From Tubulanus polymorphus (taxonomy: Eukaryota > Animalia > Nemertea): 64,000 nt of DNA. The stretch spans positions 2,042,416-2,106,415 of the forward strand of contig NC_134032.1 of assembly GCF_964204645.1 (NCBI RefSeq), in the 5' to 3' direction. The position numbers and the translations under genes were made by a program. Shown one piece after another: positions 2,532 through 62,136 of this stretch (the first letter of the stretch is position 1; every line of letters begins with the position of its first letter). The notes beneath the pieces are model-generated. The model did no database searches and was not told where the DNA came from. It worked only from the letters and a program-made list of their open reading frames with translations.

Positions 2532-26606
<24,075 letters not shown>

Positions 26607-29242: not shown

Positions 29243-29316
29243 GAAATAAAAACTCACCGCAACGTGAAAAGAAACTTATGTCGGTTATCGATACGAAAAA
29301 TGTCGATAATTGCTTC

Positions 29317-29323
29317 TATAAAA
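29317..29323 (+). promoter_or_regulatory. Candidate TATA box of the astacin-like gene
   Basis: TATAAAA 67 nt upstream of the ATG at 29384; AATAAA at 34111-34116 follows the stop. Confidence 0.5.
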
Positions 29324-29383
29324 ATATAGTTTATTCCGCGTAAATGGTCAAATCGTCCGCAACTTCTTCTACCGAGCTCAACG

Positions 29384-32300
29384 ATGTCGTCGATTTTAGG
29401 CGCCTTGGTTTTCGTCAGTCTCTGCGCCTCAACCTACCAGGTAAGTTATCCGCGATCAGAATCGCAACTTTTACTAGAATCGTTAATAATCACATCGGAA
29501 ATGTTTCGGAGGAAAATGTGCTGAATACACGAAAGAAAGAATATTTCCACCAAAAGTATTGGAAGTCATACTACCAACGGAATTGCCGGCTAGTCCAGTA
29601 TCTAGCCATTGTTCGTCAGGGTAACCCGTACGTCGTGCGGTATTCAGACTACAATCTTGGCATGAACAGCATCTGACAGTAAAAAAGGCTTTCAGTCTAT
29701 CAGTAAATGGCGGCATCACCAGTAGCGTACTGAAAAACTTTAAATATTACTGGTAATTTATGAAATTATTTAAGTCAAACACGGTGCTGGTCGATTTGAG
29801 GTCCTCGGCAATCGGTTCAATTTCGATTCTCGACTGATATTCTAGTGGGATCCTGATGGTGCGCAAAAACTTTGGAAGGATTCAACGATCGAGTACTTGG
29901 CTACCGATTTCTGTGAGTCACATTATTTATTTAAAAAATTTTTTTACAAAAAAACGCCGGTATTTCTGAGTAGATTTCCTGCATACTGATTCCATAAATT
30001 AAATTCGTAGAATTCATTCAGTTGAAGTTATAGTTTACATGTTTCCGTCATGTTCTTATACCTATGGAAAAGGGAAATCATTTCAAAGCCTTGTATTCTA
30101 ATGGAAATTAGAACGTCGGTAATCGTGATCTCATTTAATCGTTGTAATGCAAAATAAAAGGATCGTCATTTAGTAGCCGATATTAGGTTACACCAAAACC
30201 TGGGACACGGTTAACCGGAATCCGGCGTGCTAAAAATGCCACAGGTAAAAATACCAGTAGGATATATTTTCTACACACACTTAGGCAAACCTGGATGAAA
30301 TTAAAAAGTGAATCCATAATTTATAGAAAAGTCAGGCACATGGAAGAAGTGGATTAACATTGGACGCATGATATTACTATTCGCCCTAGATGGTCATTAG
30401 ATACAAACTTTTTTTTGAATACCGTTGGATTGAAAAAAAATTGATGGAAAGTTTAGATATGATATATACATTTCTAGATCGAAGAAATTTTTGAATGATT
30501 TATTCCCTCTCAAATAGCAAGACAAGACCCCCTTTTCGCATTAGGGTGCCCTTCGTGATTACTTTAGTGCACTTGCGATTACTTTTGTGCCCTCCCTGCC
30601 ATACCCTGGTCCCCCTTGCAGAAATCCTGGCTCCTGGCCAAATATCAAATCAACATCTAAGTGAATAGTTTACGATCGAAGATTGAGACGAGGTAGTTTG
30701 TTGTATGGGGATATAGTGCAAATTTCCTTGAGGCATTTTTACATCTGGTACTTAAACACCCTTGGCATTTTCAATACCGGCGTTATTACCAGTGGCATTT
30801 TACCCCTGGTGCCGTTACAGGATCCTTTCTTAACGTGGCCGAATCAGCCACCATTGATTCGGACCACATCTATAGTATAACACTTCAATATCCACCGATC
30901 TTTTATTTAACATTTTTAACTTAAAACAATATTCTAAGTACAACTGTATGTCGAACTCTCCGTATTGTCATACGCTCAATAGGTTTGGGTTACCCTAGGC
31001 TTTGAAATCACCAGCTAAATTCACAATTTCGTTCAATCACCGAATACGGTTTTTGTTTCTCAATCTTTTCAATAAACCTGTCTACAGCTGCAGAAGAATT
31101 AAAGAATCTGACGGAACGTTTGCGAACTTTCTCCAAATTGATCGGAGCGAATTGTCTTAAATTCATTCCGCAAAATGAGAATCCTGAACTCCGAACGAAC
31201 GGAGGGAAATCCATCGACTTTAGAAGAAGGTTAGTATACTTTAATCTGCTAGTCTGCGTAATACTATCGATGCGCCATCCTCCCTCTGCAGGCACTCGAA
31301 CCTGATGGCATCGCTACACTCAGCCACGGCACGAACCCCTGCATCAGTAGACCGGGTGCGCAGGTACATGCGCAGCTTTCCGAACGAAAACTGGCGGCAC
31401 CAATCAGATTGCTCGTTGTATAATCGTTGAGGCAAATTTCAAGGAAGAACTATAAATGGGAAAATCCGGGCTAAAATAAAACGGGATTTCTGATTGGCTA
31501 AAAATCACATCATCTGAACTGCGCATGTATCTGCGCACACGGTCGATTATGGCAGGGTTTCGTGCCGTGGCAATCTCGATGCCATCAGGTTCGAATCCCT
31601 GCCGGGGGAGGATGTCGATGCGCTTCCACGGTTGTGTGGGCTTACTTTGATAATTCTGGGTCCAGCGGTTTCGCATTCATTTTTACTTAACTTGATTTCG
31701 AGTGCCGTTAAACAGAAGCGTGGGCTTAACTTGATTCTTAAACCAGTTCCAAAGTTGGTAATTGATTTCTATTTTCTTGTAGTGGTGCAGGTTAATCTAG
31801 GTCGTTTAAAAACCAAAATAAATGTTTGGATATCTTTGGCATATTTTCTGTTCTAGCGGAGGCTGTAGGTCATTCTACAGCGGGATGCAGGGCAAGGGTA
31901 CCTATAGGAGAGTTTACCTGGCCGAAACCAACCCGAGATATGGAAAGTGCAATTTATTCACGAACCAGGGCAAATTCAATGTCGCCATGGCAACAAGACT
32001 CGGTTTGATGAGACAGACGAATCGGCCAATCAGAGACGCGTTTCTTAAGATGGCTTTTAAGAAACCATTATGTAAGTCCATTTATATCCCAAGGTGGTGC
32101 CAATAACTCTAAGTCTGTACGATACATATCTAAATAGAACGCTCTTTGGCAGTTGTATATAAAACAATATCACTCCTCACCAGGAAGATATGATTGATAC
32201 ACAATTTCATATACATGGGCCATAAGGGCATTTATCACCTTTTCCTTGGTAAACAGAGTTTATTAGAATACTAGCGCAGTGTGTTTGTTTATTTGTTCGT

Positions 32301-34027
32301 AGGCAAACATAGTTTATTAGAATACTAGCGCAGTGTGTTTGTTTATTTGTTCGTAGATAAACAGAGTTTATTCGAATACTAGCGCAGTGTGTTTATTTGT
32401 TCCTTGGTAAACAGAGTTTATTAGAATACTAGCGCAGTGTGTTTGTTTATTTGTTCGTAGGTAAACATAGTTTATTAGAATACTAGCGCAGTGTGTTTGT
32501 TTATTTGTTCGTAGGTAAACATAGTTTATTAGAATACTAGCGCACTGTGTGTTTGTTTATTTGTTCGTAGGTAAACAGAGTTTATTCGAATACTAGCGCA
32601 GTGTGTTTGTTTATTTGTTCGTAGGTAAACAGAGTTTATTAGAATACTAGCGCAGTGTGTTTGTTTATTTGTTCCTTGGTAAACAGAGTTTATTAGAATA
32701 CTAGCGCAGTGTGTTTGTTTATTTGTTCCTTGGTAAACAGAGTTTATTAGAATACTAGCGCAGTGTGTTTGTTTATTTGTTCCTTGGTAAACAGAGTTTA
32801 TTCGAATACTAGCGCAGTGTGTTTGTTTATTTGTTCCTTGGTAAACAGAGTTTATTAGAATACTAGCGCAGTGTGTTTGTTTATTTGTTCGTAGGTAAAC
32901 AGAGTTTATTAGAATACTAGCACAGTGTGTTTGTTTATTTGTTCCTTGGTAAACAGAGTTTATTAGAATACTAGCGCAGTGTGTTTGTTTATTTGTTCCT
33001 TGGTAAACAGAGTTTATTAGAATACTAGCGCAGTGTGTTTGTTTATTTGTTCCTTGGTAAACAGAGTTTATTAGAATACTAGCGCAGTGTGTTTATTTAT
33101 TTGTTCGTAGGTGAAGGCGATTTGAGAATCAATAAGAAAATGGAAGACGACTCGGCCTTTTTCGAAACGCCTTTCAATATTCTGTCGCACAAACGAGCTG
33201 CTATGAACGAAGCTCGACTTCAACCGAGTGTCATCGAAATCGTGAATAAAAAACTACAGGCTCTAACCGGGAGTGGTAATATCGAAGAGCTGTACAAAAA
33301 GAAGGCGAACGACCTGAGTTACTTCGACGTTTCTAACCTTCGAAGCGCGTACTGTACGCCTAAACCCGACTGGAAAAGTAAGTGTTTTGAAAATATATTG
33401 GCTGCTAGTGTTGCTTGAACACGTATCAACTAACCGTGCGTAAAAGCCATTTGTTTACTCGTGGAACATTGTAAATAGTACACCACACCGTTTCTACGAG
33501 CGATACCTGCTACGATTGGTCTCCGTAAGGGCCGCAACTTATACGTTGAGATAACTTCAATTTGTTCCAAAATATAAACCATATCATCCTCCCACGTCAG
33601 GGATTGGTCTCCGTAAGGGCCGCAACTTATGCGTTGAGATAACTTCAATTTGTTCCAAAATATAAACCATATCATCCTCCCACGTCAGGGATTGGTCTCC
33701 GTAAGGGCCGCAACTTATACGTTGAGATAACTTCAATTTGTTCCAAAATATAAACCATATCATCCTCCCACGTCAGGGATTCGAACCTGATGGCACCGAG
33801 GCTCGCCACACGGAACGAAACCCTGCCACACTCGTCCGTAAGTCGAGTACACAACCCATTCAAAATACTGACCCGCGCAGCTAATAGACCCAAAATCGCC
33901 CAATATTATTTTTTTTGGTCATTTTACAGAAAGACCGGGCGTCGAAGACCACATGGCTTGCGTAGTGAAAAGATGTCATCCTCTGACTTCGCCCAGATTC
34001 GACTATACGCAGTGGGTTGCTTTTTAA
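29384..34027 (+). CDS. Secreted astacin-like (M12A-fold) protein, predicted catalytically inactive, 281 aa, 6 exons
   Basis: Exons 29384-29440, 29846-29912, 31088-31229, 31857-32071, 33111-33377, 33930-34027 join in phase (846 nt). Signal peptide MSSILGALVFVSLCAS; astacin landmarks LWKDSTIEY, NCLKF, GGCRS..G, GKC, G..RQTNRPIRD, PFNILS, LSYFDVSNLRSAYC. Confidence 0.8.
31276..31614. mobile_element. Same MITE, copy 2 (opposite orientation), in intron 3 of the astacin-like gene
   Basis: Near-exact reverse complement of 27957-28294; 9-bp TSD TCGATGCGC. Confidence 0.85.
32249..33110 (+). repeat. 54-bp minisatellite x16 ending at the exon 5 acceptor of the astacin-like gene
   Basis: Unit GTAAACAGAGTTTATTAGAATACTAGCGCAGTGTGTTTGTTTATTTGTTC(GTAG or CTTG). 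Confidence 0.95.
33515..33830. repeat. ~88-bp tandem repeat x3 running into a tRNA-like arm related to the 27957/31276 element
   Basis: ATTGGTCTCCGTAAGGGCCGC...CATCCTCCCACGTCAGGG x3, then ATTCGAACCTGATGGCA. Confidence 0.85.
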
Positions 34028-35795: not shown

Positions 35796-36893
35796 TTATG
35801 TAGATTCGCTGCTGTTATTGATTTCGGTGACCGCATTTTCCTGAAACAATCTGCGCTGTCTGTTTGACCGGCGGAACAATTTAAATATCGCCGCTCTGTA
35901 TTCCGGTAATTTCCATGCGTAAATACACGGATTTATCGCCGAGTTGATCACGCTCAGCGGCAACGTCAGCCGTTTGGCGTTCGAATGGACGACGACGGTC
36001 GGCTGTGACGTCACCATTTCGTCGTAAATCGTAATCGAGCAAAGTGGTAGCCAGCACACCGCAAATAATCCCACCAACAAACACATGTTCTTCGTAAGAT
36101 GTATCTCCTTTTCGAACGCGGCGAATAGTCGTTTCGGGCGCGTGGTTTTTGATTTATTATCGCCCGTTTGTCCAGCGTTAGCCGGCGGCGTCGTCTTGCC
36201 TTGATCGTCGGTGACCGGAAGATCCGGCATTTCCACGAATTGCGTCGATTTCCAATCGCGGATTTTTTGCCAAGCGACCGTCGCGATCCAGCCGTAGCAA
36301 ACCGCCTGCACGATCACCCCTAGTATCGGCTGGAACGCGATCACCAGTAAATGTTCCCTGATCAGAAAATCGTGCGCGTAGCATTTCCGCTGTGGCGAAA
36401 ATACGTTCCAGAAAATCGCCGGAATCGTCTGCAACAACGACGTCAGCCACGTGACCGACGTGATCGCCAAACAGCGCTTGCGCGTCATGATCAGGTGATA
36501 GTGTAACGGATCGTAGATACAAACCACTCGGTCGCACACGATACACAACAAACAAAACACCGAATTCAACATTGAAATCAGCATCAACAATATTCGAAAG
36601 ACGCATAGATTTTTCACGTATAACAATTCGGGTCGGGCTAAAGTCGCTATCTCCATCGCTAGGGAAAGACCGATTCCTAAATCAGCCACGGCCAGGCTAA
36701 AACTGAAATAATTCGCCGGCCGAACTTTCAAAATTTCGTATTTCAAAGCGCACACGATAACGATGAAATTGCCGCTTAACGTTATCACCATGGTTATGCC
36801 GTTGAGTACGATACATAGTATGTCGATGACGTTGAGGCCGGTAACGCCTGAAAGTTGGTCCCGCGTAACGGAAGAGTTGAATCCGGCAGCCAT
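35796..36893 (-). CDS. Intronless class A GPCR, adenosine-receptor/GPR119-like
   Basis: 365 aa; GN, SLAVADL, CDRVVCIYDPLHY, CWLP, NSAINPCIYAWK. Possible 5'UTR intron 37082-37595. Confidence 0.92.
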   Translation of the reverse strand: MAAGFNSSVTRDQLSGVTGLNVIDILCIVLNGITMVITLSGNFIVIVCALKYEILKVRPANYFSFSLAVADLGIGLSLAMEIATLARPELLYVKNLCVFRILLMLISMLNSVFCLLCIVCDRVVCIYDPLHYHLIMTRKRCLAITSVTWLTSLLQTIPAIFWNVFSPQRKCYAHDFLIREHLLVIAFQPILGVIVQAVCYGWIATVAWQKIRDWKSTQFVEMPDLPVTDDQGKTTPPANAGQTGDNKSKTTRPKRLFAAFEKEIHLTKNMCLLVGLFAVCWLPLCSITIYDEMVTSQPTVVVHSNAKRLTLPLSVINSAINPCIYAWKLPEYRAAIFKLFRRSNRQRRLFQENAVTEINNSSEST

Positions 36894-55069: not shown

Positions 55070-58000
55070 CTAGGTTTTAACAATCGGTTTCCTTCGTTCA
55101 TTTCGTGCTCTGACCGATTTCATATCGATAGTCAGAATAGTGTAAAGTAACGGGTTTAAAGTAGAGTTTATCGGTAAGAAGAGAACGGCCAGCCAAGCGG
55201 CGACCTGGTTCGGTATTTCGACCGAAAAAACGACACAAACCTGGACGGTTATCAACGGCAGCCAACAGAAAACATTACACAGATTGATGACCAAGCTACG
55301 TCGGGCTAGAACCAGTTCTGTGGGATCGGCTCTTCCCGAGCCAGACCTGCTTCCGGATACGTGTCTGTACATCTGCGCGTAGGTGATCATTATCATAGCA
55401 AGGACCATCGTATTATAAACAACGAATATACCAAAGGAATATTGCCAACCATTGACGTTCATAGAAAGTAAGTTCATTGGTAGACACACGCCTGTGTTAC
55501 CGTAAAAGTAGTCACCGAAAAATGAGACTTTGGACAGTGGCAGAAAAGCGGCTAGACTTGGAAGCAACCAACATAAGCACGAAACTATAGTCAACCATTT
55601 TGAGGATAGAAATGGACTGCCAGAAAATGGATCGATGATTTTTAGGTATCTGAAACGCGTCAGTAGAAGAAGATACGTCAACGAGCCTTCACTTGATATC
55701 GTTACCACGACCCCTGCCACACTGCATAAGACACTTCGTGTCCAAAATTCCGAATGCAAATAATAATCTCCTTTATAAAAGTAATCGGCTCCCGCGATCA
55801 AAAACAAGTAAACTGCCATCAGAAAATCGCAAGCCGCAATATTGATGATGAATATATCTGAATATTTGCTTTGCGTTTCTGACGAATTTCGAATGAAATT
55901 GACACGAAAAAATATGACAATACTGTTCACGAACAAACTGAAAAAAGCAATGACCCAGATGATAGCTCTCAGCACAGTATTCTCCATGAGGTCCGAGCAC
56001 GATGAAAATTGATCGGGAGCCGGGAGACACCGGCCAATATTCGGTGCCATACAACAGAATTTGTACGCGTCAGAAGCGAGAGAATGTAACGATGTCAAAT
56101 TGTCCAAGATGTTAGCTTCGACTGAAATGATCTGAGAGTTGTTGGTTAAATCTAAAATCTCCAGTGAACCTAGCCTAGAGAATGCGTATCGGGATATCGA
56201 ATCGATTGTATTGTCGCTAAGATTCAAAACTACCAACGCGGTTAGACCTCGAAATACGTTCGGACCAAGAATCGATATGGAGAGACCGTTAAGATTAAGA
56301 ACGGGAAGCGACCCCAAACCGACGAAAGTACCGTCGAATAAGAATCGTAGCGGATTTCCAGCGAGAAAAAGCTCTTTCAGACTCGTTAAACCAGCGAATG
56401 TATTGGCAAATAACGAAACAAGGCGATTATAGGAGAGATCTAATGTATAAAGATTGTGAAGTTGAGAAAATGCATTAGATACGATACTAGATAAATCGTT
56501 ACGTGATATGTTGAGAATACGAAGATATAAGAAATTGTTGAACGTCAACGTGTTAATAAGTATTCGGTTATTCGACAGAATTAAAGCTCGTGTAAGAACA
56601 GGAAAGAATCCAGATATATCCGACAAACTACCATTTTCACAATTTATAAAATGACCTTGACATTTACAGGAGCCGGGGCAGGTGACGTTACAGAAGGACT
56701 CGTCATCCGAGTTATATTTACAATTTACGACACCATCACAAACTTCAGATTGAGGAATACATCGATTTTCTTGACCGCATTTGAACATACCGGGGCAGAG
56801 GAAAGTCTCACAGTTTTGCTCGTCTTCTGAATTGGGACAATCCGAATGACCATCGCACACCTGTCTGATCGGAATACAGTAAGATCCTGGACATTTTACA
56901 GTACCAACTGGACATTGGAATTCAGTACAACTCTGTATATGTTCAAGTCTTCTACAAATGGGAAAACCCGTCGCCATCCGTTCTAGAATACATCTATGGC
57001 GTCTTGAATAACAATAAGGAGAATCAAAAGAACATCTCTGTTCATCCGCTTCGTTACATAAATTAGTGAATTCCGTCTTGCAATTAGAGTTACTGTCACA
57101 ATCAATCGGTGGGCTAACAGTTATATTGGTTACTATCTCATCTTCTTCGAGGTCCCCGCCACAATCTACAACACCATCCCGATACAACTGAGAGCTGATA
57201 CAATTACCATTAACACACAAAAACCCGTTACATTCGTTCGAAGAACAGCCGATCTCATCGGATTTGTCTTTACAATCATTAAGTCCATCACATCTTTTTT
57301 GTTTACCCACGCATTGTTTATTGTTACACTTAAACTGTTCAGATGAACATGGAGTATGATAGCACGAGTTCTCATCCGATCCGTCAGCGCAATCACGTAC
57401 GAAATCACACACATTACTGATCGATATTACTCGTCCGTCGGAACAGTGGAACTGATGCTGTAGGTTCGAACCAGAACAATCGAGTTCATCTTCACCGTGT
57501 TGACAGTCGCTCCTGGTATCACAAACGCGATGGTCGCTGATGCATCGTTGATCGTTACATTTGAACTGCCACGATTTACAACCGCTTATGGAAGCTATCT
57601 CGTCGTCAGTCACGTTATACGAACATAGCACAGAATGTTCTAGATCTGTGACATTATTGAAATAAGTTACCGACCATTCCACTTTTTTAATATATGTGAT
57701 ATCATCTCTGGTTACCACTGGTTTGACTGAGATTATTTCATTGCTATCCGCTTCTTTTGCCAGTATACCTCCGTATTGGTGCCGATAGTCGAACGACTCA
57801 ATCAAAACCTGAACGCCGGGTGTCACTTTTCCTATTTCACCGCCGATTGTACGACACATCTCCTCAGCTTCCCAGGTGAATAACTTTCGTTTATTCCAGG
57901 CCGTCAATATCTGATAGCAACGTCCTTCAACGCCAACCCACCCTTTTAGACACGTGGCATTGAATTTGTCAAACACGTTTTTTGTTTTTCCACTAGTGTC

Positions 58001-58310
58001 ATTTAATGCACCATGATCAGATACGTTCAGCGCCGGCGAGTTGTGGCTTCCATCTCGTTCACAAATAAACGTTGTATGTGCTTGCGTGACCTCGCACGGG
58101 AATCGAACCCAATTCGCCGACCCTCGAGGATTATTCAGTATCATAGCCGTACACGGTACATTGACGTCATTTATCGGTTGTTTCCGTAGCTGGGATATCA
58201 ATCCTTGGATAACGGCGGGTAGTGTTTTGTTAATTGCTGGTATATACCACTCTGTGTAGCTCAACGGTTTTCCGTCGACCCATGTATAATAGCTACCATT
58301 TACCTGCAAG

Positions 58311-58404
<94 letters not shown>

Positions 58405-61400
58405 ATATGAATATGAATATATATATGAATAAAGTTTATGAATATAAATATGTTAAAACAATGAAGGAATTTTGTTACATTCAAATGTCGTCGTTCTTTT
58501 CCTTACCTGCCATTTTAGCCCAATCAGTAAAACAAGCGCCGGTCGTGTATACGCTTTCAAAATCAATTTAGTAGCGAACAGGTGTTTTACAGCCATCATT
58601 TCATGTTCGGAGTTGATACTGAGAAGATGTGCTCCATATTTCTGTTGACAGTGCAATTCAGCGTTCTCCCAGTTTAGATGCTGACCCGTGATGTATCTAA
58701 TGCACGACACACCGGAATCGAGAAAACCCGCTGCGCAGTCATTATCTCGAAGCTTTCGCATAGTTGCCTTTTCTAAACTATATTGAATTCGAAATGTTGG
58801 TACATAACCCTTTACCGAAAATTGCAGTTCATACCCGAGTAGACTGTGCAATACAAATCCGGGTAAAGCGTTTCTTTCACATATCTTGGTCTCGTAGATG
58901 CTTTCAGCGATAATCTTAAGTCCACTACGAATTCGTACGTATTGCCTAAGCAATACACTATCTCTAATTACGTGGGTTTTAGACTCATTGCAGGAAGTTT
59001 GTCCTATCGATTTGATGACGAATCTGAGGTACGCGTTTGGACCGCGGTGGTCAAAATAATAATACCACGCCCTACATCCAGTGATGGGTGGTGTCCCAGG
59101 ATAGAGCACCGATTGCACAAGTCCGCACTTATGCCTTTGTATGGCATGGGGCGAAACATAAACACCCCTGTTAATTTTCACTCTTTCGCAGTGATGACGG
59201 ATGACAACTACTAAACCTTTACCAGACATCCCAGCCTTCATGAACGGATATACACCTGATAACTTAATGTGGCTACGTATGAGCCCATTATCTAGCAGTC
59301 TACTAGAATACTTCATTACAAGTCCACAAAAACCAATGAATTTCCCCGAACATCCGCCGAATTGGTATTTATACTTCGATAGTACGAATATGTTTTCTAT
59401 CGGAAGGCGTCGGTTTTCGGCCGTAATCGCGAGGCATCGGGACGACGCATTAATATGACGTTCCCCTTCCCTCAGGACATACCCGTCACAGTCAGTTGGA
59501 GCAAAGGCAATACTCCCGCTTCCCATATGACTTCCCCACTTGTAAGCGTAGCCGACCACAATAACCGGTCCCCCTGATGTGATCAGGTTTACCACCGAGC
59601 GACCGTAGTTGACCATTCCGTGATGGCAATACGGCCCGAAGCGGCGGGCTGTACTAAAATCATTACCATCGAATATATAAAATCCAGCTCGCTCGCACGC
59701 CTCTGATGCCACTTTGAACACTAAATCATCTTCAGAGATAACAACCTTCGAGGGAAAGGGGAATCTAGTGACGCGATATTTTAGCATTTTCTTCCCACTG
59801 GAATGGAACATATCCCCGAACGCCAGTCTTTCTATCCCAATTGCATATCTGTATACCTGAAATGAATCATATCAAAATCTGAAATGTACTTTCGCCCCGC
59901 ATTATATATAACCTCTGTACAGATAATAATTATATAACAATAACTTATTCAGGCTAAAATCCATATAAAATATGCTCATTGGCTTATAAACACCATATAA
60001 AAAAAAGCAAACACAAAACAGTGAAAACTAAAACTGGTTTAATCGAAAGCTTTGATGAACAAATGGGTCTTGAGTTTAGATTTAAAATCATCGATTGAAG
60101 GACTCGATTTAATTAGCCTGAATAAATTATTCAAGGGTACTGGGGCAGAGTACGCGAAGGCTCTCCGCCCGGCTGAGACGAGATTAACGCCATGTGGGGC
60201 AGATGAAAGTCCCGAATAGATAATTTACTTTATACATATATCCGAATAACAGAATTTCGAATTTCTCGAACGATAACAGAACCCCGGAGATAAAACAGCT
60301 GTAGACGATACTGCGGGTTCACCTTACATGATATCAACTGCTTATTCAATCTCAGATAATTCGTCGGCCACCGATTGCCTTATCGAAACCAAAAACGTCA
60401 GATAAAAGCTCATAAGTGTACAAGACAACTTATTTTTCATCTGTTTCAATGTTTTCCCGTTTTTTATCAATGATCGTACACGCACGGAAACATTACACCA
60501 TATCCCAACTTAAAGGGCGCAATATGCCAACAAAATTCAACTTTCCGTGAGTAGTTGAGAAAAATAAAATGGATGGCGACCCGAGATGGCACTGATCGAA
60601 CAAGGTATCTGTAATTAGCCAAAAATTAGTCATTAATTTATCTTTCATTTCGTGTACGTAGTTCACACACAGCCCGCAGTGGCGCTATTTACGTATGGCG
60701 TTTTCGTTTGCCTGCTGTATTCACAGAACCACGCAACTAACTAATATATTTTTATCATGTCAAAAAGTAAAAATCATGGTCAAATGATATTGTAATCGGG
60801 CAAATGATATTGTTATCGTAAGATATTCCGTTAAAAGTTAATCATTACCTTAACGAAATGGGATGGCCTAAGACGAACAAAAAAATATAGCTACTTCACG
60901 AACCTGTCGAGTTGCTACATCGATGTCTGTTATTTTCAATGATTCCACTTTGTAGTTTATAGATGAGTTAGAAGCCGTTCTGACAAAGCTATCTGATTTG
61001 AGTAGACACAACGTCACCAGAAATCCGTCAGACTCAACGCTTAATGATTCGAGGTAATTGTAACTTTGCAGGATATCAGATTTCACATTTGACGGCCCCT
61101 CGTGTTTATATACACCGATTACCTCGCTGGAATTTATCAAATTATGTGTCCAGCTAAAGACCACGTACTGCAACACTTCAGCAGTGATGGACCAGCAGTG
61201 CAAGTGTCTTGATTGAGTCATTACGTATAAACTCTTGTCATTTGGATTAAGCACTCCATAGCGATTAGTAAAGGTCTGAATCAAGGGATTCATAATGTTC
61301 CAACCCGATGCGTTATAGGTTTCCACAGTCAGCACACCAGTTATAAAGAACCAGGGGCCTTTCCTCGCAAAAACCATTCTGGCTTGATTATTTCTAGCGT

Positions 61401-62136
61401 AAACTATCCACGACGATTGTCCTCGTTGATCTCGTAACGCTAACAAAGCTTCACTCGAGTTTGTGCCATCGTAAACCCTAATCGCCTGAACCGAGCCCGG
61501 CTCGGTCATGTAATCGAGGCCAGCGATAGTCAGTTTCAATCCCATGCCGTCGGGTAGACCGGGCCATTCCAATTCCAGCTGACAGAACCTATTGGGTACA
61601 TCAATAAAGAATTGGTCGTGTCCCGTTTTATGAGATTGGAATTGAGATATAGAATAACCTCTACAACTGTGAGCATATTTTAGGCGAGTGCCGTCTTGAA
61701 GACGAAACGCTATAAAAACGTAACCACCTCGTTTGTTTGAGACACCTTTGTACAACACGGAGAACGAGTTAGTGCGCATCATGCTTACTTCTTTCGCTTT
61801 GCCGCATAATTTTCTATCAGATTCACTGATCATTAGATGGGGTCCTTTGCTGCACAACATGCTATCATAGATATCGTAGTAAGCTTGGATACGGATGAGA
61901 CCGGGCAATGACCTGTTGACGGTCCAACGGCATTCGACATCGCGAGTCAACGAAGGATAGTTCGGCGAAAAGAGAAAACCGGATCGCGAATCGACAAAGT
62001 GCCACGTGTTGTTACAGGACGCGCTGACGGTTACGTACGGGTCTTCGTTAGCGCTTTGAACAGTCGTTGGAGTCTGCGCTGCGACCTCTGCAGTAACGAA
62101 CAGGCTCGACAATAACGCTATGAGGTGACGTGTCAT
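55070..62136 (-). CDS. GRL101-type leucine-rich-repeat GPCR with CUB-like, C-type lectin and LDLa ectodomain, ~1938 aa, 3 exons
   Basis: Exons 62136-60904, 59856-58507 and 58303-55070, all phase 0 with GT/AG. Signal peptide; CUB ([15 protein letters not shown]) plus degenerate CUBs; C-type lectin split by intron 2 ([31 protein letters not shown]) and a second partial one; about 6 clear LDLa repeats (e.g. [13 protein letters not shown]); LRRNT, ~7 LRRs; hinge FCC...FSSCSDLM; 7TM with CWLP and NSTLNPLLY. Confidence 0.92.
58313..58430. repeat. (AT)n microsatellite in intron 2 of the GRL101-type gene
   Basis: AT run next to the acceptor at 58304-58305. Confidence 0.98.

Follow-up and report, generated by a model that had tools for sequence, protein, structure and literature searches.

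What does a gene encode when its exons keep the layout of a secreted astacin peptidase and its active-site motif keeps almost nothing of the enzyme? The locus that raises this question lies on the plus strand of a 64-kb window (the whole stretch of DNA that was analysed, contig C8:2042416-2106415 of a 268-Mb assembly) from the palaeonemertean ribbon worm Tubulanus polymorphus. With a probability of roughly 70%, as judged from its letters and those of its relatives, this locus is a six-exon gene for a small, basic, secreted and disulfide-stabilised protein of the astacin fold, which would be unable to bind the catalytic zinc or to hydrolyse peptides. The loss is shared and conserved by this gene and its four sisters, and therefore a working, non-cutting pseudo-protease is the probable product rather than the remains of a dead gene.

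The gene model was obtained by reading the sequence with a script. Six exons, separated by introns that all run from GT to AG (donors GTAAGT, GTGAGT, GTTAGT, GTAAGT and GTAAGT for introns 1-5), join into an open frame of 846 nt, that is 281 codons and a TAA stop. The exon borders, the splice sites and the length of the product are those claimed in a preliminary description of this DNA, and the TATA box and poly(A) signal listed there are present as candidates. The features of the gene are as follows.

29317-29324, plus strand: TATA-like box TATAAAAA, about 60 nt 5' of the ATG; a candidate, from the letters
29384-29440, plus strand: exon 1, the ATG and a signal-peptide-like segment of 19 amino acids, ending in phase 0 (10-residue hydropathy maximum 2.8)
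29846-29912, plus strand: exon 2, mature N-terminus WDPDGAQKLW..IEY, corresponding to the LW..G.IPY start of the astacin domain
31088-31229, plus strand: exon 3, a helix and the first conserved Cys (NCLKF), the equivalent of astacin TC.RF
31857-32071, plus strand: exon 4, the edge strand GGCRSFYSG, the second disulfide Cys (GKC) and the degenerate active-site helix
31981-32037, plus strand: pseudo-active-site motif VAMATRLGLMRQTNRPIRD, standing where HExxHxxGxxHExxRxDRD belongs
33111-33377, plus strand: exon 5, the lower subdomain with the former Met-turn region, the C-terminal helix and the last domain Cys (SYFD..N.R.AYC)
33185-33199, plus strand: SHKRA, where the SxMHY Met-turn and the Tyr zinc ligand are expected
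33930-34027, plus strand: exon 6, a conserved C-terminal tail of 32 amino acids with two Cys (HM.C..K.C ... F.Y..WV.F), and the TAA
34111-34116, plus strand: AATAAA poly(A) signal, about 85 nt 3' of the stop; a candidate, from the letters

The loss of the catalytic apparatus can be followed residue by residue. When VAMATRLGLMRQTNRPIRD is set against HExxHxxGxxHExxRxDRD, only the G, the R and the RD are retained, exactly as had been claimed. The three zinc-binding His are replaced by V, T and R in this gene and by S, K and K in its paralogues. The catalytic Glu is an Ala, and the Glu that follows the third His and anchors the mature N-terminus is a Gln, in this gene and in the paralogues alike. 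The former Met-turn was found to read SHKRA, again as described. Its Met is a Lys here and a Leu in the paralogues, and the Tyr ligand is an Ala; the changes from Met to Lys and from Tyr to Ala hold in either possible register, and in one of these the paralogues carry a Tyr one residue off the ligand position. From the translated frame, then, all of the zinc ligands and the catalytic Glu are lost in this gene. A peptidase that is still active through a non-canonical metal site or mechanism would be in keeping with the retained fold signature, edge strand and disulfide Cys, but it would have to work with V, T, R, A, K and A in place of the three His, the Glu, the Met and the Tyr. The mature protein has only three His, none of them within the cleft motif, and this explanation is very improbable.

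The predicted protein has the outline of a secreted one. Residues 1-19 are strongly hydrophobic and signal-like, and the domain begins about 10 residues past the predicted end of the signal peptide, leaving neither a propeptide nor an Asp-switch latency segment; this bears out the earlier reading of a signal peptide with essentially no propeptide. The same arrangement is seen in the paralogue LOC141910545, in which the Pfam match opens at residue 32, about 10 residues past the signal peptide. The mature protein is of about 30 kDa, with an isoelectric point of 9.5 and 44 Lys and Arg against 29 Asp and Glu, in line with its description as rich in Lys and Arg. In MAFFT and hhalign comparisons with canonical astacin exons from the same genome, four of its seven Cys (NCLKF, GGC, GKC and AYC) fall on the columns of the astacin disulfides, as had been proposed from the sequence. 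The last of the four (AYC) stands one residue earlier than in the canonical exons. The conserved disulfides of astacins are C42-C198 and C64-C84, and the Cys positions for both are present here. The three further Cys are conserved extras: the C-terminal tail holds two, and the exon 4/5 junction splits the third. With seven Cys in all, a free thiol or a dimer would be predicted. The astacin blocks that are kept comprise LW...IEY, the edge strand C.S.YSG, the second Cys, the helix and loop, TP.NI.S and SYFD..N.R.AYC.

The gene is not a singleton. Four intact sisters have its six-exon layout; contig C9 carries one of them and contig C5 the other three:

LOC141910545 (P0008), contig C9: 291 amino acids in RefSeq
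LOC141905394 (P0009), contig C5: 288 amino acids in RefSeq
LOC141905392 (P0001), contig C5 at 4341.6-4344.6 kb, minus strand: 190 amino acids in RefSeq
Fourth paralogue, contig C5: an unannotated copy

In a genome-wide search with exons 4 and 5, exon 4 is 49-54% and exon 5 38-41% identical to the paralogues, at expectation values (E) of 1e-11 to 1e-9. For a paralogue exon compared singly, the figures are 47% and 1.8e-11 for exon 4 and 38% and 1.4e-9 for exon 5. Compared exon by exon with LOC141910545, the gene gives genome-wide E values of 1e-9 to 1e-8. By tblastn, exons 2-6 are each matched by the corresponding exons of the four paralogues with equal intron phases. Exon 2 is 53-58% identical to its counterpart (E 0.001, same phase) and exon 6 is 40-43% identical. 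A counterpart of exon 1 is present in the paralogues, and the paralogue counterpart of the exon 3 Cys falls on the canonical TC..F column in the alignment. The exon 3 donor GTTAGT is common to all of the paralogues, and LOC141910545 and LOC141905394 have six coding exons and intron phases equal to those of the model described here. The paralogues also resemble the gene in their Cys pattern, in the lack of a propeptide and in their isoelectric points (9.2-9.5). The full-length C9 protein, used as a query against the genome, found no family members beyond these five. Within the family this gene stands furthest apart: its identity to the sisters is about 41%, and theirs to one another is 72-98%. 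It is the only member on its chromosome-scale contig, where it lies amid genes for G-protein-coupled receptors (GPCR).

The part of the protein that has departed furthest from the enzyme is the part that the family holds most constant. A derived helix, AM..RLGLM.QTNRPIRD, replaces HExxHxxGxxHExxRxDRD in all five genes. The VAMATRLGLMRQTNRPIRD motif is identical across the five paralogues at 14 of its 19 residues, against about 41% identity overall, and is the most conserved stretch of the family. The derived motif is common to all five genes; therefore, the loss is ancient and predates the divergence of the paralogues.

The claim that the gene is hidden did not stand as it was put. RefSeq already models its 3' half as LOC141910003, whose product XP_074656794.1 (labelled P0005) has 149 amino acids and begins at an internal Met of exon 4. 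Its sequence is identical to the end of the 281-residue model, so that an annotation made independently places the junctions between exons 4 and 5 and between exons 5 and 6 where the model does. The locus is under-annotated, not hidden. The annotation could also be taken at its word, with the 149-residue protein as the real product and exons 1-3 either untranslated or outside the transcript. XP_074656794.1 has exactly this extent, and LOC141905392 is likewise modelled without its N-terminal exons. On the other hand, such a product would comprise half an astacin domain, lacking the N-terminal sheet and two disulfide partners, and would be unlikely to fold; its ESM Atlas model reaches a predicted local distance difference test (pLDDT) of 0.38 and finds chance-level matches only. 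Exons 1-3 are moreover open, in phase, poor in variants and homologous to coding exons 1-3 of LOC141910545 and LOC141905394, so that the short product has little probability. The RefSeq model of LOC141905392 starts from a 7-residue exon within intron 3 and omits the start of exon 4. Exons 1-3 of that gene are open and in phase, and it is probably another under-annotated member of the family.

The descent of the gene from astacins, which the preliminary description had taken from motif spacing, is supported through the paralogues, through profile alignment and through intron positions. LOC141910545 matches Pfam Astacin at E 1.7e-5 (25.1 bits, against a cut-off of 22.5), and the match spans positions 2-188 of the 189 in the profile. 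Each of its 30 nearest ESM Atlas clusters by features carries the Astacin family (best score 0.94, with 185 shared features). Its Atlas model (pLDDT 0.61) matches the structures of astacin clusters only, at template modelling scores of 0.57-0.63 over 200-233 residues.

Profile alignments against canonical astacin exons of the same genome bring the gene itself into the comparison. With hhalign, the exon 4 alignment, headed by this gene, matches at P 0.011 in a register that places AM..RLGLM.QTNRPIRD on E..HalG..HE..R.DRD. The exon 5 alignment matches at P 0.0099 in the expected register, with TPFNILS on PYDY.S.M and SYFD..N.R.AY on S..DI..IR.LY. The two matches are collinear and do not depend on each other. 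MAFFT gives the same exon 4 register and sets three Cys on nearly invariant Cys columns; it misplaced short exon fragments and canonical C-terminal exons, and those alignments were excluded.

Gene structure leads to the same origin. By intron position, two classes of canonical astacins can be told apart in this genome, one with introns near Pfam positions 79 and 148 and the other with introns near 55 and 117. In one canonical class a phase 2 intron directly precedes the GC.S Cys, and two phase 1 introns lie at a Gly 13 residues after DRD and about 5 residues past the last Cys. The pseudo-astacin genes have an intron before the GC.S Cys in phase 2, offset by two codons from the canonical one, an intron after RD in phase 1 (12 residues on here, 13 in the paralogues) and an intron 6-7 residues after the last Cys, also in phase 1. 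Three introns match in phase and, exactly or nearly, in place, and the gene structure shows common descent with astacins. Taken together with the profile evidence, the gene is of astacin descent on its sequence, and its protein very probably keeps the astacin fold.

Whether the gene is still maintained can be asked of the family and of the locus. Between the C9 and the C5 genes, the ratio of nonsynonymous to synonymous substitution rates (dN/dS) is 0.23-0.27, with a bootstrap interval of 0.15-0.40, and between copy C5a and the other two C5 copies it is 0.40-0.43. The youngest C5 pair, 98% identical, has too few differences to inform the ratio. Despite the saturation of its synonymous sites, considered below, the frame of this gene is still open and its ten splice sites are canonical. 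A sequencing run that represents a different haplotype or individual (X1) was compared with the assembly over the parts of 29250-32234 covered by its contigs. It differs by 28 single-nucleotide polymorphisms (SNPs) and 7 indels in 2221 nt of non-coding sequence and by one difference in the 481 nt of exons 1-4. The sole exonic variant, T>C at 29411, changes F10L in the signal peptide. Exons 1-4 are thus six-fold depleted in variants (Fisher P 0.024 for SNPs and 0.007 with indels), which supports present-day constraint, also on the exons that RefSeq omits. Given the intact frame, the purifying selection on the family and the depletion of variants in the exons, the gene does not look decayed, as had been stated earlier. 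The two marks of a pseudopeptidase, catalytic residues that are lost in a gene that selection appears to keep, are both found here.

A silent or decaying relic of the family, intact by chance or recently silenced and making no functional protein, would look similar in part. The sequencing runs at the locus are DNA only and the RefSeq coding sequence is truncated. The gene stands alone and has diverged far from its sisters (41% identity), a minisatellite and high-copy repeats have enlarged its introns, and the +4 position of the exon 3 donor varies in other individuals. Against such a relic stand a frame of 281 codons that no stop or frameshift interrupts and splice sites that are canonical at all ten borders, even though synonymous sites are saturated against every paralogue, the retention of the key family blocks and of all seven mature Cys, and the six-fold depletion of variants in exons 1-4. 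Real decay in this family can also be seen for comparison. A partial copy on C5 at about 4352.0-4352.5 kb, minus strand, lies between two intact paralogues and consists of remnants of exons 4 and 5 only, with an in-frame deletion of two residues inside the conserved motif. This loss of exons and damage to the motif is what the gene on C8 does not show, and a relic is unlikely.

The reading of the locus as a gene for a secreted pseudo-astacin has to be weighed against several results that count the other way. In comparison with the paralogues, the gene has a proportion of nonsynonymous differences (pN) of 0.40 and of synonymous differences (pS) of 0.78. Synonymous sites are saturated against every paralogue and dN/dS on its own lineage is undefined, so that the proposed test of selection speaks for the family and not for this gene. 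The gene's exons, searched singly, have no match to Pfam Astacin up to E 10, and profiles of exons 4 and 5 find no astacin among the sequences of the Protein Data Bank (PDB), nor does the profile of a full-length paralogue. The homology is therefore transitive, through the paralogues, and the Pfam search proposed in the preliminary description succeeded with LOC141910545 and gave nothing for the single exons of this gene. The proposed structural comparison was run on a paralogue and gave astacins as its best matches, with low confidence. AlphaFold reached a mean pLDDT of 37 with the family alone and of 51 when canonical astacin fragments were added. In a Foldseek search with the latter model the ten best matches are all astacins, with E between 3e-3 and 3e-2, among them BMP1, crayfish astacin, ZHE1, TLL1 and HCE-1; this search is partly circular because of its input alignment. 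The RefSeq product begins at an internal Met and has no signal peptide. The three sequencing runs that contain this stretch are DNA, with contigs that cover introns and exons alike and no splice joints. At 31233, the +4 position of the exon 3 donor, the assembly and all paralogues have A, and all three DNA runs, from two samples, have T; this polymorphism or assembly difference may weaken the junction of exons 3 and 4. Finally, action outside the cell as a non-catalytic binder is purely inferred, and the binding, structural, mucus or toxin-type roles suggested in the preliminary description are guesses.

How a pseudo-astacin might act can be outlined from the parts that are conserved. The protein would fold without zinc, and a latency prodomain would not be needed, as there would be nothing to keep latent. 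The Arg or Lys at the position of the third His perhaps fills the former metal site. The edge strand (C.S.YSG), on which astacins dock their substrate, and the remodelled helix and loop (RLGLM.QTNRPIRD) are the parts of the cleft most strongly conserved in the family, and they could then hold a peptide or protein ligand and leave it uncut. The protein might serve as a decoy, a competitor or a scaffold, possibly in connection with the many active astacins of this animal; roles of this kind are described for ADAM-type pseudopeptidases (PMC11266112). The astacins of this genome are very greatly expanded, with at least 163 profile matches counted per exon and more than 100 loci; given this number, substrates or inhibitors of active astacins would be plausible ligands.

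The family has not been found elsewhere. When 1.84 billion representatives were searched with the hidden Markov model (HMM) profile of exon 4, the matches were Tubulanus proteins and repetitive false ones only. Word-based searches, the family profile included, returned the same family only and no orthologue outside the species, at limited sensitivity. Within the limits of those searches, the pseudo-astacin family looks lineage-restricted. A more specific proposal is that the five genes form a nemertean-specific family in which the metal site has been rebuilt as a new, strictly conserved cationic binding site (RLGLM.QTNRPIRD), and that the proteins are decoys or regulators of the worm's many astacins, or non-enzymatic components of its defensive mucus or of the proboscis secretion. 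This proposal is tentative and less likely than not.

The introns of the gene are rich in repeats. Intron 3 contains, at 31250-31650, a very-high-copy inverted-repeat element (word depth about 1.3e5, against 27 for single-copy sequence) at whose edges contigs break, and which is probably a repeat of the type of miniature inverted-repeat transposable elements (MITE) or short interspersed nuclear elements (SINE). Intron 4 holds a minisatellite on the plus strand at 32242-33112, with 16.2 copies of a 54-bp unit according to Tandem Repeats Finder. Many of the units carry the motif TAG|GT, and the last one supplies the acceptor of exon 5. In intron 5, at 33514-33781, an 88-bp unit is repeated three times at 98% identity and is followed by a tail that resembles a transfer RNA (GGGATTCGAACC...), at which ARAGORN called no transfer RNA. 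The search of exon 6 against Pfam gave no family match.

There is no other astacin within the window. Around the gene lie intronless rhodopsin-type GPCR frames at 5774-6802 on the plus strand and at 16123-17247, 18920-19594 (partial), 20806-21789 and 35796-36893 on the minus strand, with Pfam 7tm_1 matches at E 1e-6 to 1e-35. A frame of 1079 amino acids at 55070-58309 on the minus strand combines five low-density lipoprotein (LDL) receptor class A repeats, leucine-rich repeats and a rhodopsin-type seven-transmembrane domain, and is similar to LGR/relaxin receptors. Two further frames on the minus strand, at 58453-59811 and 60868-62136, code for 452 and 422 amino acids and have no Pfam match.

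The closest known systems are the single-domain astacins, such as crayfish astacin and the fish hatching enzymes ZHE1/HCE-1 (MEROPS M12A, PF01400). They share with the pseudo-astacins a domain of about 200 residues with the same order of blocks, the four disulfide Cys, the R..RD after the active-site helix and secretion, and it is among their structures that the model of the paralogue finds its best Foldseek matches. In contrast to them, this gene has no HExxHxxGxxHE, no Met-turn Met, no Tyr ligand and no Asp-switch propeptide, and its exons fall below Pfam detection. The pseudo-astacin family adds three conserved Cys and a tail of 32-40 amino acids. Inactive astacin homologues are catalogued in databases; to our knowledge, none of them has a defined function.

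The family offers a clean case for study, with a small single-domain protein without a propeptide and five paralogues at about 41-98% identity, whose comparison pinpoints the parts of a dead cleft that are still under selection. The result also corrects an under-annotated RefSeq gene. Should a role as regulator or decoy, or in secretions, prove true, these would be the first pseudoproteases of the astacin type to have a defined role.

A second comparison is provided by the pseudopeptidases ADAM11, 22, 23, 2 and 7 (M12B), which have a metzincin fold with substituted zinc ligands and general base and act by protein-protein binding (PMC11266112). These belong to the adamalysin and not to the astacin subfamily, and they are multidomain membrane proteins. 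The Met-turn, which ADAM pseudopeptidases usually keep (PMC11266112), is lost in this gene. A review of metallopeptidase pseudoenzymes from 2024 lists M12 pseudopeptidases from the ADAM branch only and none of the astacin type (PMC11266112), which is the type to which the family of this ribbon worm would belong.

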